Counted from the first letter of the stretch, positions 25,207 through 48,787 are shown. The stretch is DNA of 50,550 nucleotides from Octopus bimaculoides (GCF_001194135.2 NC_068982.1:19849151-19899700); one strand, 5' to 3'. Numbers and translations are program-made. Notes: generated by a model not told the origin, from the sequence alone.

Positions 25207-25929
25207 ATATGTTAGAAATGTCAGCTGTAAATTGTTTCAGTCTTAAGTATTACCTGTACGTACTTATAATGGTATTTATTGTCTTTTGTCCAATAACATT
25301 TGCCCAGTGTCCAACCACTGGTACATCTTGGGTTAGAGATGAAAATAACTGTTCAAAATATTATGTATGTCTTCATGGAAAGCGCATCTCAATGCCACCT
25401 TGTCCTCATCGTACTGTATATTCTCTGTTGACTCATTCGTGCGTGTGGCAGAATTCTCATGCTGATGATTGTTCGAAAGAGATATCAACAACAAAGAGAA
25501 TTGATCTTAATGCAAAGAATAGACAGAACAAAATCGTTGTTCGAAAATTTCCCTCAAGAAAAAACCGTACACATATTTTGCATCATCTCATTGTTAGAAC
25601 AACAACAGCAACAACAACAACAACAGACGAACCGACGTTGAGTAGTACTTGGATGAAAAGCGTTAACAGAATAGTGAACTTATCTTCGGGTGGAATCGAG
25701 AATAATATACTGCAATCTAATTATACGAGTGACAACGATACTGAAATTAAAGACAGCGTTCAAGTAGATTCTGATATGGCTAAAAAACATACAGATGAAA
25801 AAGATTATTATTATTTCTATTATTACGATAGCGAAGACAGTGAAAATAATCAATTTGATTCTGACGATTACTCTTGGGAATATAACAATGCAGATTACGA
25901 TGACGACTGGTCGGAAGATGTTGATGAAG
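25207..25929 (+). CDS. First visible coding exon of a secreted chitin-binding serine protease: signal peptide, CBM14/peritrophin-A domain, Thr-rich linker, Asp/Tyr-rich tract (ATG at 25209)
   Basis: Acceptor ttttaatttccag|AT at 25206/25207; donor GAAG|gtaagt at 25929/25930 (phase 1). Hydrophobic N-terminus ending FAQ-C. Cys spacing C-X13-C-X5-C-X10-C-X12-C-X9-C (aa 34-88, nt 25308-25472) fits the peritrophin-A consensus. Confidence 0.9.
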
Positions 25930-25969
25930 GTAAGTTAATTGTCGAAAGACTGACTTTCCCAATTCTTTC

Positions 25970-26385
25970 TTTAATCTTCTATCTTTTACTTGTTTCAGTC
26001 CTTAGTCTGCGGCCATGATGGGGCACAGCCTTTAAAGATTTAGTCGAACAAATCGACCACGGTATTTATTTTTTAATAAAACCTGGTACTTTTACTATCA
26101 GTCTTATACTTATACTTTGCCGAACCGCTAAGTTACGGGGATGTAAACATGACATCATCGGTTGTCAAGCAGTAGTGAGGGACAAATACAAATACAATGA
26201 TACGCGCGCGTACACTCACACACACACACACACAGACACACACACACACACACACACAGAGGCACACACGACAAGCTTCCAAACTGTTTCCCTCTTCCAA
26301 ATCCACTCACAAGTCATTGGTTGCCCAAAGTGTCGTGCAGTAGGACTGAACCCGAAAGCAAACTTCTTACTATACAGCCACGCCT
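25970..26385 (-). mobile_element. Degenerate S1 SINE just inside intron 1
   Basis: TACTTGTTTCAGTC...GCGGCCATG...GAACCGCTAAGTTACGGGG...(CA)n...AAATCCACTCACAAG...CACAGCCACGCCTGCG. Confidence 0.8.
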
Positions 26386-26590
26386 GCGTTTTCCAATCAA
26401 GATCATGCGATCGATTTGCTTTTTAGTATGGATAAGTAACAGCTGTCTCAGAAGCTATGCAATATCAAATGTTATGTTAATGTATAAACGGTACTACTTA
26501 AATACAGCAGTCCCGACGCATCTAAAGGGGCGGTAATCTCGTTTTACTGTAACTACTGTGACTTCACATAAGCGACCCTTGTTTAAGTCG

Positions 26591-26709
26591 AAACTAGAAA
26601 CTAAACTTAACCTTAACTGGCGGGGGTGAAGAATACGTACACCACCCATTTTCTGCATAACCCTAACCATAAAACTAACTCTAAAGCCTAACCCTAACTC
26701 AACCCTAGA
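26591..26709. repeat. Degenerate (CCCTAA)-like hexamer tract
   Basis: TAACCCTAACCATAAAACTAACTCTAAAGCCTAACCCTAACTCAAACCCTAG. Confidence 0.6.
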
Positions 26710-28109
26710 GAGTGTGCACTGTAAAAACATCAGATTAAAAACAGACGATATTGTGGGGGCCCTTACATCATTAACAGTAGTTTTGGTAAAACGACTTTAC
26801 CCCCTCCCACTTCATATCGTTAAGTAGATGCAACAGGATTTCTGTATTTGAGTAGTGCCGTATAAACAACACCGTACGTATTGAGTCGTTTTCTTTTATT
26901 CTGTCTTATCATAGGCAAGAATTACCTTCAATTCTTTTAATTGTGCGCCCCGGCTGATATTGAACCATGTCTAATGCTGCCCATTTCTTGATAAAGTTTG
27001 ACCATGCCTGATACAGGGCCTCATACGGTTTTGTGGTAGGATGTTGGCTTTGCCTGCAGTCATGTGGTTAGTATTTCCATCTCCTACAGCGGTATCTGAG
27101 GCCAATGTCTCTTGTCATAAATTCAAATTATCTAATATCTTGTAGGCGAAATTTGCTGCTGTTGTCTGAGCGTGTGCGTGTGTGTTTACGTCATATATCC
27201 GCAACGAATAAATTATTGCAGTAAAGGGATGCCTTCGAACAAAGTTCACTGAGTTACAGGTCCCCCTCAATTGTGAAGAAAGCCTTTGATCAACGATGCG
27301 ATCGTCCACAGATTGCCATATTAAATAATAAACGGAAAATAATAACGTCATTACTACTGCACGCCAAGAAATGATCTCCTAAAGTTAATATTTACTCAAT
27401 CCTCAGTACTTCATTTGAATGGCGCTTTAACCTGGTGTGCGAAACATTAAACAGTTGAAGACCACATAGCTCCTTTCGAACTGGATCCCAGTGAATTTTA
27501 GACATTTGTATTTAAATAAAAACATGCATCTAACGAAACAGTAGACACATCTCTAGTTCTGTCGTAGCTTGCAGTGGTGATGCATAACTATTTCTTGCTC
27601 AATATCATATTTGATGAAACAGATACATTGTCAAAAGCAGTCGATTCGTGATCATACCGACTTTTAATTTTCAGACACGTCTTTTCAGTTTTAATGGGAC
27701 GTAACTACGTATTTGCCCACCCAAGGACTACATTTTCTCGTGTGCTTCATAAAAATTAATATTTTTTAATGAAATTTTGTACAAATACCTTTCAGGTGGA
27801 GTAGATACGATTATATCAGAACTTGTGGGGAAAAAAAAATTGGTAGGTGCGCCCATATGCATACTGACGCACACCACAAATAAATCTAAAAAAAAAATTA
27901 AACTTGAAATGTTGAAAAAATTATGTGATGCATGTATGTGTGTGCGCGCACCAACTTTTTTTTCCAGGTTAAACTCTAATATAATCATAATCTACACCAT
28001 CTGAAAAGTATTTGCAGAAATTTTCATTATAAATATTCCTTTTTCTGAAAGTAAAGAGAAAACAAACTCGAAAGTGTGTGCAGACTTGCGTAGTTTAGTG
28101 GAGAAAGAA

Positions 28110-28485
28110 GTAAGTCAATAACATCGACCCCAGTGCTCAACTCGTACTTATTTTATCGACCGAAAGGCAAAGTCGACCTCGGCAGAACTTGAACTCAGAA
28201 GGAAAAGATGGACGAAATGTCGCTAATCATTTTGCCCGGCGTACTAACGATTTTTATTTCTTTATTGTCCACTAGGGGCTACACACAGAGGGGACAAACA
28301 AGGACAGACGAAACGGATTAAGTCGATTATATCGACCCCAGTGCGTAACTGGTATTTAATCGACCTCGAAAGGATGAAAGGCAAAGTCGACATCGGCGGA
28401 ATTTGAACTCAGAACGTAGCGGCAGACGAAATACCGCTAAGCATTTCGCCCGGCGTGCTAACGGTTCTGCCAGCTCACTGCCTTG
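28110..28485 (-). mobile_element. Two S2 SINE copies with CpGs largely intact
   Basis: GGCAAAGTCGACATCGGCGGAATTTGAACTCAGAACGTAGCGGCAGACGAAATACCGCTAAGCATTTCGCCCGGCGTGCTAACG. Confidence 0.9.
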
Positions 28486-46971: not shown

Positions 46972-47149
46972 TATTGTTCAGGTCACTGCTTGGAATCAAA
47001 CTCAGAATCTTGGGGTTAGCAGCCCACGTTCTTAACCACTAACCCACAGGCATATGTCGTAGTGGTTAAGAGCATGGGCTACTAACCCCAAGATTCCGAG
47101 TTTGATTCCAAGCAGTGACCTGAACAACAAAAATAATAATGATAATAAC

Positions 47150-47201
<52 letters not shown>

Positions 47202-47358
47202 TACACCTTAGGAATGGGAACCCAGGTTCAAAACTTCCCCAAGACACCTGATGAAGGCTGGTGGGTATATCAGTATATCAGCTGAAACATTGTGTTAACA
47301 AACAAGATGAGGACAAATGTCCGTCAATTGTAAATAATGTAAATAATGTAAATAATGT
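46972..47358. mobile_element. Palindromic tRNA-headed hammerhead element (H1), locus C
   Basis: Inverted head 46972-47040 abutting forward head 47047-47122, (AAT)n, tail with hammerhead motif 47243-47296 (GAAACAUU variant), ending (AAATAATGT)x3. Confidence 0.85.
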
Positions 47359-47929
47359 GTTCTGCAGTGTCAACAAACTTAGTACGATTTTATTGGGAAG
47401 CAAACTGCTTACTACACTACCATACCTGTAACTTGTCACAGTTTTCTTTCTAAAGTGTGATCCAAAATGCCTTTTTGCGGCTCTATCAGTGTTTTCCAAG
47501 GCAGTTCCTTTACTTGTTAATTATAAGCAATAGTTGGGGGCATGTCTTTCCTGTAACTCTGTTCAATCATTTAAAAATTTTCAAATTTGAATGACTATGC
47601 AACTAATAATATATTGCTTGTGTGCATCAATTAAACATATGATTTTCCCATACTTTAACTGCTTTTTGATGACCTCTCTTACACCTGTTCAACCAAAAAC
47701 AGATAGTTGGTTTCTATCAATTAAACATAATTTTTATAACTGTCTTGCTTCGTTGATTGCTAGTTTCAAATTAATGAAACATTAAATTAACTGGAGTCAG
47801 AATTTGTGTACAAGCAACTGCTTGCTTATTTATATCTATCATCATGTAATATGACTTAAAATACTTTCTGACTGTTGTAATTCAATTGATGTAAATACGT
47901 TCATTTGCATTGCAATCTCAGAAAATATT

Positions 47930-48370
47930 GATCTTAAATTTTGACACAATGCCAGCAATTTTGGTGTTAGGATAAGTCGATTACATCAACCCCCAGTGTT
48001 CAACTGGTACTTATTTTATCAACCCCAAAAGGATGAAAGGCAAAGTCCACCTTGGTGGAATTTAAATGGTGAATGTGTAAACAGATGAAATGTCACTAGG
48101 CATTTTGCCCTGCAAGCTAACCATTCTGTCAGGTTGCTGTCTTAACCTCAGATAATATTCTTTTCTACTCTAAGCAAAAGGCCCAAAATTTTTGAGGCGG
48201 GAGCCAGTCGATTAGATCGACTCCAGTACACAACTGGTACTTAATTTATAGACCCCGAAAGGATGAAAAGCAAAGTCGACCTTTGAACTCAGAATGTAAA
48301 GAGAGACGAAATACTGCTAAGCATTTCACCCGGTGTACTAACGCCTCTGCTAGCTCACTGCTTTTAACCT
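47930..48370 (-). mobile_element. Two S2 SINE copies; the first is strongly CpG-decayed
   Basis: ATCAACCCCAAAAGG...GTCCACCTTGGTGGAA against consensus ATCGACCCCGAAAGG...GTCGACCTCGGCGGAA. Confidence 0.85.
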
Positions 48371-48684
48371 CAGATAATATTAATAACAATTAGAAACAGT
48401 TTATGTACAGTTGATTTGCTTGACTAAAGGTGGTGTTCCAGCATGGCCGCAGTCAAATGACTGAAACAAGTAAAAGAGTCAAAGAGTAAAAGTGTATATG
48501 CATGCATGTACGTATGGGTACATATACGCATATACTAAAATACAGATACATAGAGGCATATATATGTATAAAACATTGCTATAAAAAGTACTACTTTACT
48601 TTTTCCTTGGTCAAATTTATTTCATTATCTTCACCTTATATTTCTCTCACCCATATCCCCTTTTTTCTTCTGCTCTGCTTTCAG

Positions 48685-48787
48685 TACTTTCAACAGTCCT
48701 CAAATATTACAAGTGGTGTTAGCTGACAACGACCTAATCAATGATTCGGGATTTGAAGTGTACAGATATGTGGATGAAATAGTAATC
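48685..48787 (+). CDS. Coding exon: protease strands between the catalytic His and Asp
   Basis: Strong pyrimidine tract ttttttcttctgctctgctttcag| and donor ATC|gtaagt. Phase 2 entry completes GGT; (G)TFNSPQILQVVLADNDLINDSGFEVYRYVDEIVI matches the typical 'V.LG...L.....E....V..I.I(H)' segment; phase 0 exit. Confidence 0.85.

Follow-up and report, generated by a model that had tools for sequence, protein, structure and literature searches.

Serine proteases of the S1 family that carry chitin-binding modules are known from insects. Sp22D of Anopheles gambiae is a mosaic protease of hemocytes and hemolymph which binds chitin, and Tequila/GRAAL of Drosophila is induced by infection; in both, LDLa and SRCR modules accompany several to many chitin-binding domains (PMC1761132). 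The gene analysed here was found in 50 550 nucleotides of Octopus bimaculoides DNA (GCF_001194135.2 NC_068982.1:19849151-19899700, hereafter the window), a stretch that is identical base for base, gaps included, to GCA_001194135.2 CM046602.1. It corresponds to RefSeq XP_014781704.2 and, like Sp22D and Tequila, encodes a peritrophin-A (CBM14) module placed N-terminal to a single S1 domain. The LDLa, SRCR and multiple chitin-binding domains of the insect proteins were not found by Pfam, which gave one CBM_14 and one Trypsin match in the octopus protein. Insect proteins were not among the closest protease-domain relatives in the match lists and, because of this, the octopus (molluscan) fusion was likely formed independently of Sp22D/Tequila, as far as can be judged from the sequences.

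The catalytic half is best compared with chymotrypsinogen A and plasma kallikrein, with which it has in common the five disulfide positions, the catalytic triad, Ile16, Asp194, the fold and the propeptide cysteine. The N-terminal chain differs: it consists of a CBM14 and a disordered linker in octopus, but of 13 residues in chymotrypsinogen and of four apple domains in kallikrein. Residue 189 is Gly in octopus, Ser in chymotrypsin and Asp in kallikrein, and the residue preceding the activation cleavage (P1) is Phe in the octopus protein whereas it is Arg in the two zymogens. Taken as a whole, the data are best explained (probability of about 0.6) by an annotated, intact gene for a tethered zymogen that would process or turn over the proteins of chitin-containing matrices.

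Gene structure and integrity

The window contains the 5' half of the annotated XP_014781704.2 gene, i.e. coding exons 1–3 of 6, with canonical AG/GT dinucleotides at all exon borders (Table 1). The junctions proposed in the original prediction, which had been made from the raw sequence (25929 to 36450, phase 1, and 36621 to 48685, phase 2), coincided with those of the RefSeq model and were canonical, as were all splice sites of the gene. Splicing of exons 1–3 gave 332 codons with a frame open throughout, and the product was 100% identical to amino acids 1–332 of XP_014781704.2 ('serine protease 30', O. bimaculoides, 488 amino acids). Exon 1, which encodes the signal-like segment, the CBM14 and the entire linker, corresponds to amino acids 1–241 of this protein, and its open frame of 269 codons has a chance probability of ~4e-9 at the local composition (36.7% GC). 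In the unspliced DNA, the frame is shut upstream of the ATG by an in-frame TAA (25197–25199). The AG located two bases before the ATG suggests a possible non-coding 5' exon further upstream, and it explains why the gene was originally taken to start at 25207. The start site of Octopus sinensis has the same context (atttccagat/ATG).

The gene had been described as hidden and composed of three exons. It was, in fact, already present in RefSeq with both Pfam domains on the record, and it has six coding exons. Exons 4–6 were placed on L001, a stretch of the same chromosome record (offset 15208), 4–13 kb past the window end, with the start of exon 4 at ~4.2 kb; the anticipated downstream exons with DIAL and GDSGGP motifs are exons 4 and 6, respectively. 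When the full protein was compared with the window by tblastn, only the three exons were recovered and no tandem duplicate was found. Earlier models of the gene are shorter: XP_014781704.1 starts at Met149 and is without the CBM14, and UniProt A0A0L8GEX9 is a truncated model that starts at Met62 and runs into intron 3. The junctions were thus read correctly from raw sequence, yet they rediscover an annotated gene, and the remaining value of the finding is comparative.

The six gaps located in introns 1 and 2, together with the disagreement between the earlier models, could indicate an artefact, i.e. exons wrongly joined, exons hidden in the gaps or a decaying pseudogene. Exons 1–3 contain no N, and all six listed gaps fall within the two introns. 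The locus of the O. sinensis ortholog (XP_029648642.2, 93% identical protein with the same architecture) is gap-free and collinear with the window (70–92% nucleotide identity); its six exons and their splice motifs are those of the O. bimaculoides gene. At the positions equivalent to the gaps, the O. sinensis locus contains AT-rich microsatellites or short tandem repeats (GC 0.23–0.36), and no exon-like open reading frame (ORF) was found there. These repeat-only equivalents, and the fact that the exon 2/3 junction aligns gaplessly to the Pfam Trypsin profile and to plasma kallikrein, make hidden exons very unlikely from sequence comparison. The intervening exons that had been envisaged in gaps 28663–29348 and 34793–35501 were therefore rejected. 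In addition, the O. bimaculoides paralog XP_014782509.1 has all its intron positions in common with the gene.

The coding sequences of O. bimaculoides and O. sinensis were compared by the Nei–Gojobori method (synonymous divergence, dS, of 0.15). The ratio of non-synonymous to synonymous divergence (dN/dS) was 0.069 for the protease, 0.26 for the CBM14, 0.22 for the signal segment, 0.47 for the linker and 0.20 for the whole protein. The protease and the CBM14 are both under purifying selection and the gene is intact. A decaying pseudogene was rejected on these ratios (0.07–0.26 in the domains) and on the intact motifs, which include the triad and all the disulfide cysteines. An artefact of any of these kinds is highly improbable and has been largely refuted.

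Gaps 28663–29348, 34793–35501, 37411–37849, 40472–40913 and 44045–44134 are bordered by microsatellites of the TA, TG or CA type. In O. sinensis, the same positions are occupied by simple-repeat arrays of up to 1.3 kb, which accounts for the breaks in the O. bimaculoides assembly. The window end (50550) directly adjoins another assembly gap (L001 35343–36378).

Protease domain, activation site and N-terminal modules

The order of domains had been given as a signal-like segment, a single CBM14, a Thr/Ser linker, an acidic tract and a protease with SCG...F/IIGG...TAAHC, and this order was recovered as such. In the product of exons 1–3, the Pfam Trypsin profile matched amino acids 251–331 over its first 75 positions (E = 9e-17) and crossed the exon 2/3 junction without a gap. 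The full protein matched positions 1–220 of 220 (197 bits). When the protease model was searched with Foldseek, TMt values of 0.85–0.90 were obtained with kallikrein, factor XIa, tryptase, elastase and chymotrypsin. Residues were numbered according to chymotrypsinogen A (Table 1), and the plasma kallikrein alignment agrees with that numbering. Judged by its sequence, the enzyme is a complete S1A protease, with the catalytic triad and the five chymotrypsinogen-type disulfide positions all present. A pseudoprotease, which the loss of Asp102 or Ser195 would have implied, was not found: both residues are present (D345 and S438), as are Gly193 (G436) and Asp194 (D437), all of them encoded by exons 4 and 6.

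The cysteine of the SCG motif, Cys243, had been proposed to bond to the catalytic chain. Its counterparts in the alignments are Cys1 of chymotrypsinogen and the heavy-chain cysteine of plasma kallikrein, and its expected partner is present, Cys366 being aligned with Cys122. Both cysteines are invariant across 16 aligned homologs, and the nine cysteines of amino acids 251–488 leave one unpaired within the catalytic domain. A Cys243–Cys366 (c1–c122) tether that would keep the CBM14-linker chain attached is thus supported by the alignments.

The predicted activation site, SPF/IIGG, aligns with SR/IVNG in chymotrypsinogen and TR/IVGG in kallikrein. Fifteen relatives were inspected; P1 was hydrophobic (F, Y, L or M) in all 14 in which the site was found, and Gly189-Ala190 was invariant (15/15). 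Across the family, these features point to an activating enzyme of the chymotrypsin type, which may be the protease itself. Among mosaic S1 zymogens such non-tryptic activation is uncommon, and it gives a hint of self-activation. The residues of the S1 pocket are G189, A190, A216 and N226. Asp189 of the trypsin-like (Arg/Lys-specific) proteases was not found in the octopus protein, which has Gly432 at this position and a two-residue deletion relative to the Lys-Asp189 of kallikrein; a non-tryptic specificity is therefore predicted.

Such a non-tryptic activation site would also be compatible with a self-activating initiator of immunity. By analogy with mosquito Sp22D, the CBM14 could recognize the chitin of fungi or parasites, self-activation and downstream proteolysis would follow, and the hemocyte and hemolymph location of Sp22D and the induction of Tequila by infection (PMC1761132) fit this role. 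The recognition modules LDLa and SRCR of these proteins are, however, absent from the octopus protein; no clip domain (PF12032) was matched in it by Pfam at E ≤ 0.01, and no sign of a cascade partner was found. An immune sensor, which is proposed purely by analogy, is quite unlikely.

The single CBM14 module gave a Pfam PF01607 (CBM_14) match of 34.6–35 bits (cutoff 22.1) over profile positions 1–53 of 53. The peritrophin-A consensus is CX13-20CX5-6CX9-19CX10-14CX4-14C (PMC8035744), and the cysteine spacing of amino acids 34–88 (13/5/10/12/9) fits it. The AlphaFold2 model of this domain had a predicted local distance difference test score (pLDDT) of 91.8. Its ten best fold matches in the PDB were all of the CBM14 type, with probabilities of 0.93–1.0 and E-values that are weak (0.02–0.5) because the domain is small. 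The best match was chitotriosidase (5hbf, TMq 0.68, root-mean-square deviation 1.5 Å); 4zce, 6so0, 1dqc, 4z4a, 2mfk and 8in6 were also returned, and the proteins named among the matches were chitotriosidase, Der p 23, tachycitin, Avr4, Blo t 12 and Aplysia EHEP.

Aplysia kurodai EHEP (8in6, 8in3), which was solved with tannic acid, was thus among the best matches of the model. This would be in keeping with an octopus module that has the CBM14 fold but does not bind chitin, its ligand being a polyphenol or a protein, or that is a structural pro-domain; the enzyme would then not be targeted to chitin. Such a module is improbable: the CBM_14 score exceeds the curated cutoff, the six-cysteine spacing and the aromatics between Cys2 and Cys3 (SKYYVC) fit peritrophin-A, the top fold match is the CBM14 of chitotriosidase and the domain is under purifying selection. 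The EHEP match also indicates that molluscan CBM14-like modules can take non-chitin ligands.

The linker that follows (amino acids 89–242, ~150 residues) is predicted to be disordered, with an AlphaFold2 pLDDT below 50 for amino acids 92–238. Insertions and deletions relative to O. sinensis are located in its basic and Thr-rich part (amino acids 89–195), which is probably a mucin-like spacer with predicted O-glycosylation. The acidic Tyr-rich tract (DEKDYYYFYYYDSEDSENNQFDSDDYSWEYNNADYDDDWSEDVDEG), located directly upstream of the propeptide cysteine, has hardly changed in O. sinensis, and in the Babylonia homolog this cysteine also follows a comparable acidic run. The tract might be a site of Tyr sulfation, bind cations or minerals, or act as an exosite.

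The hydrophobic segment at the N-terminus, an equivalent of which is present in all family members, reached a Kyte–Doolittle value of 2.30 (19-residue window, amino acids 16–34) and was modelled by AlphaFold2 as a helix (amino acids 7–26). Amino acids 1–32 are probably a signal peptide, with a signal anchor as the alternative. In the latter case, the segment would stay uncleaved and the enzyme would be a membrane-anchored type II protease. The hydrophobic stretch of ~17–19 residues (Kyte–Doolittle 2.3) and the 20-residue helix of the model would suit an anchor, the O. sinensis ortholog is named 'transmembrane protease serine 7-like' by NCBI and the heterobranch gastropod homologs have 30–50 residues ahead of the segment. 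But only ~13 residues precede it in the octopus protein, where a small-residue motif (TFA/Q) follows it; no SEA, CUB, LDLa or SRCR stem domain was detected by Pfam, and the signal peptide of the chiton homolog is short and of the classical type. The likelihood of a type II protease was therefore considered low.

Molluscan relatives and probable role

The taxon distribution was drawn from the match lists of homology searches and from local hidden Markov model (HMM) scans, and is not exhaustive. A protein was counted as a member of the family when Pfam or a family HMM gave a single CBM14 together with a single Trypsin domain. The list of the representative search was topped by multi-protease 'polyserase' proteins, and its stretch count was unusable as a proxy for CBM14 plus Trypsin; matches were re-scanned locally. 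A search with the five-sequence CBM14 alignment alone gave no matches (no candidate in the word index).

The CBM14-S1 architecture, which had not been recognized when the locus was originally read, was found in proteomes predicted for species of three molluscan classes, a chiton and herbivorous gastropods among them. It was present in O. bimaculoides, O. sinensis, Argonauta hians (GAB1606193.1), the chiton Liolophura sinensis (XP_064609786.1) and the gastropods Patella (P. vulgata XP_050400141.1), Haliotis, Babylonia, Pomacea, Biomphalaria, Physella, Aplysia and Elysia. No CBM14 was detected in the close protease-domain relatives of Batillaria (795-amino-acid model) and Nucella (254-amino-acid fragment). 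Among the matches listed, the nearest proteases of bivalves (Magallana, Ruditapes, Dreissena, Potamilus, Mizuhopecten) and of Lingula were without CBM14. The family is thus confined to chitons, gastropods and cephalopods among the matches listed, and its absence from bivalves may be a sampling artefact.

A paralog with the same CBM14-linker-S1 architecture, XP_014782509.1 ('coagulation factor IX', 524 amino acids), is located ~36 Mb away on the same chromosome (CM046602.1 55791762-55890665, stretch L002, reverse strand). The gene spans 79 kb, and its six-exon layout has all five intron positions in common with the window gene, which speaks for a single, ancient fusion event in molluscs. In a neighbour-joining tree of the protease domains, two CBM14 clades were obtained at 100% bootstrap, and the nearest bivalve, brachiopod and bryozoan proteases, without CBM14, fell into other groups. 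The window gene and its O. sinensis ortholog formed a separate long branch beside the two clades. The paralog fell, at 100% bootstrap, together with proteins of Babylonia, Nucella and Plakobranchus, so that the duplication predates the cephalopod–gastropod split.

Members of the family have in common one CBM14, a low-complexity linker, the 'CG' propeptide cysteine, a hydrophobic P1, G189-A190 and a single S1 domain. The protein of the window gene is 34–47% identical to the others and differs from them by its own long branch, by A216/N226 instead of the G216/S226 of the main clade and by the distinctive acidic Tyr-rich tract of its linker, whereas heterobranch members have ~200 extra N-terminal residues. 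The names given across the family ('serine protease 30', 'coagulation factor IX', 'TMPRSS7-like', 'stubble', 'acrosin') are automatic, and those of XP_014781704.2 (the window gene itself) and of its ortholog XP_029648642.2 are best-hit labels. No description of the family or of these accessions was found in the literature on molluscan CBM14-trypsin proteins, radula and shell proteomes, octopus salivary gland or the argonaut eggcase. What is new is the family-level picture of a coherent but misnamed molluscan family with a CBM14 and a chymotrypsin-like protease; the gene itself was already in RefSeq.

The Octopus vulgaris model CAI9718741.1 has an unrelated N-terminus of 130 residues in place of the signal peptide and CBM14, and rejoins the octopus sequence in the Thr-rich linker. 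This N-terminus is probably a mis-predicted first exon.

In the mechanism we propose, the protein would be secreted as a zymogen. Cleavage after Phe250 would free Ile251 to form the Ile16–Asp194 salt bridge, and the CBM14 and linker piece would stay covalently attached through Cys243–Cys366, like the A chain of chymotrypsin or the heavy chain of plasma kallikrein. The CBM14 would park the enzyme on chitin, from where the long and flexible, probably O-glycosylated linker would let the catalytic domain sweep the surrounding matrix. Cleavage is expected to be chymotrypsin- or elastase-like from Gly189/Ala190 and the missing Asp189. The enzyme would serve in the processing or turnover of proteins in chitin–protein structures such as the radula, the beak, the cuticle of gut or suckers, or the shell matrix.

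Some observations weigh against this tethered, chitin-directed enzyme. Going by the EHEP structures, which were solved with tannic acid, a CBM14 fold is no guarantee of chitin binding. For a signal peptide the hydrophobic N-terminus is rather long, and it could instead anchor the protein in a membrane. Ala216 and Asn226 could narrow the S1 pocket, which would make self-cleavage after Phe uncertain. Finally, the long branch is so far found in Octopus only, and the role of the window gene may differ from that of the family.

This divergent branch would also fit a new, lineage-specific use of the protein as a feeding or venom enzyme, secreted by the salivary or digestive gland, whose CBM14 would dock on crustacean cuticle while the protease loosens the protein matrix. 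The architecture fits this use, which includes the prey digestion envisaged at first, equally well. However, it is also found in grazers and in a chiton (Patella, Haliotis, Aplysia, Biomphalaria, Liolophura), so that the ancestral role was not crustacean predation and a cephalopod-specific ancestral role in the beak or on crustacean prey is weakened; and no salivary-gland report of a chitin-binding S1 protease was found in the literature. A feeding or venom enzyme is unlikely, and a matrix role is likelier than one specific to crustacean prey since chitons and grazing gastropods have proteases of this design too.

The matrix role can be extended to a broader claim, that of an undescribed and ancient molluscan family of chitin-anchored, self-activating chymotrypsin-like proteases, confined to the radula-bearing classes and used for the remodelling of radula, beak and cuticle, of which the acidic Tyr-rich Octopus paralog would be a derived, specialized member. 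In this full form the claim is unlikely. Should the family indeed dock a protease onto chitin, it would be a candidate for the processing or recycling of the protein phase of molluscan chitinous hard parts. It would then be a second, probably independent, case of the chitin-binding protease design known from insects.

Coordinates and other elements of the window

The features of the gene and the copies of a dispersed repeat are listed in Table 1.

Table 1 Features of the octopus CBM14-S1 gene and dispersed repeats of the window (positions counted from the first nucleotide of the window; c, chymotrypsinogen numbering; aa, amino acids)
Feature	Position	Strand	Details
Possible hint of an upstream non-coding 5' exon	25205–25206	+	AG acceptor-like dinucleotide, 2 bases before ATG 25209
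Coding exon 1	25209–25929	+	721 nt; aa 1–240 and first base of Gly241; phase 1; donor GTAAGT
N-terminal hydrophobic segment	25209–25304	+	aa 1–32; core LYVLIMVFIVFCPITFA; possible cleavage after TFA (TFA/Q)
CBM14/peritrophin-A, single	25308–25472	+	aa 34–88; C-x13-C-x5-C-x10-C-x12-C-x9-C
Linker, basic then Thr-rich low-complexity	25473–25793	+	aa 89–195; TTTATTTTT run at 25599–25625
Acidic Tyr-rich tract	25794–25929	+	aa 196–241; 19 D/E, 9 Y and 1 K/R of 46
Intron 1	25930–36449	+	10.5 kb; phase 1; gaps 28663–29348, 34262–34271, 34793–35501
Coding exon 2	36450–36621	+	172 nt; aa 241–298; acceptor ...TCTAG, donor GTGAGT; Cys42 also encoded
Cys243	36455–36457	+	c1; exon 2
Phe250/Ile251	36476–36481	+	c15/c16; exon 2
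His294	36608–36610	+	c57 (His57), in TAAHC; exon 2
Intron 2	36622–48684	+	12.1 kb; phase 2; gaps 37411–37849, 40472–40913, 44045–44134
Coding exon 3	48685–48787	+	103 nt; aa 298–332 (TFNSPQ...DEIVI); phase 0; acceptor ...TTCAG, donor GTAAGT
Intron 3, start	48788–50550	+	exons 4–6 outside the window
Exon 4, beyond the window	would be 54731–54902	+	Asp102 (NDIAL), Cys122
Exon 5, beyond the window	would be 62780–62916	+	Gly189
Exon 6, beyond the window	would be 63860–64021	+	Ser195 (GDSGGP), stop codon
Asp345			c102
Cys366			c122
Gly432			c189
Ser438			c195
Dispersed repeat copies	4857–4981, 8419–9265, 28111–28484, 29982–30118, 30835–31004, 33271–33626, 47973–48366, 49562–49684	both	

The dispersed repeat (~150–370 bp) was found in at least 10 copies, which lie on both strands and often form tandem dimers; many copies are also present in the O. 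sinensis locus. It looks like a short interspersed nuclear element (SINE). A tRNA-derived origin was rejected, as no tRNA or tRNA-like head was found by ARAGORN.

Intron 2 also holds transposon remnants and SINE-like repeats. A mariner-type transposase remnant, broken into short ORFs, is located at 46283–46507 (probably to 46786) on the – strand (Pfam Transposase_1, E = 3e-8), and this was the single significant match when the transposon-like ORFs were scanned with Pfam. Another ORF of this intron (38384–38815, + strand) encodes one C2H2 zinc-finger-like motif (Pfam zf-C2H2, 21 bits, below cutoff) preceded by the translation of a microsatellite-derived 'CMYV' repeat, and is probably a decayed fragment. 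Upstream of the gene, an ORF of 173 amino acids (20349–20870, – strand) gave no Pfam match; we take it to resemble the C-terminal region of invertebrate retroelement proteins (RPDIV...IPxDxN...GALG).

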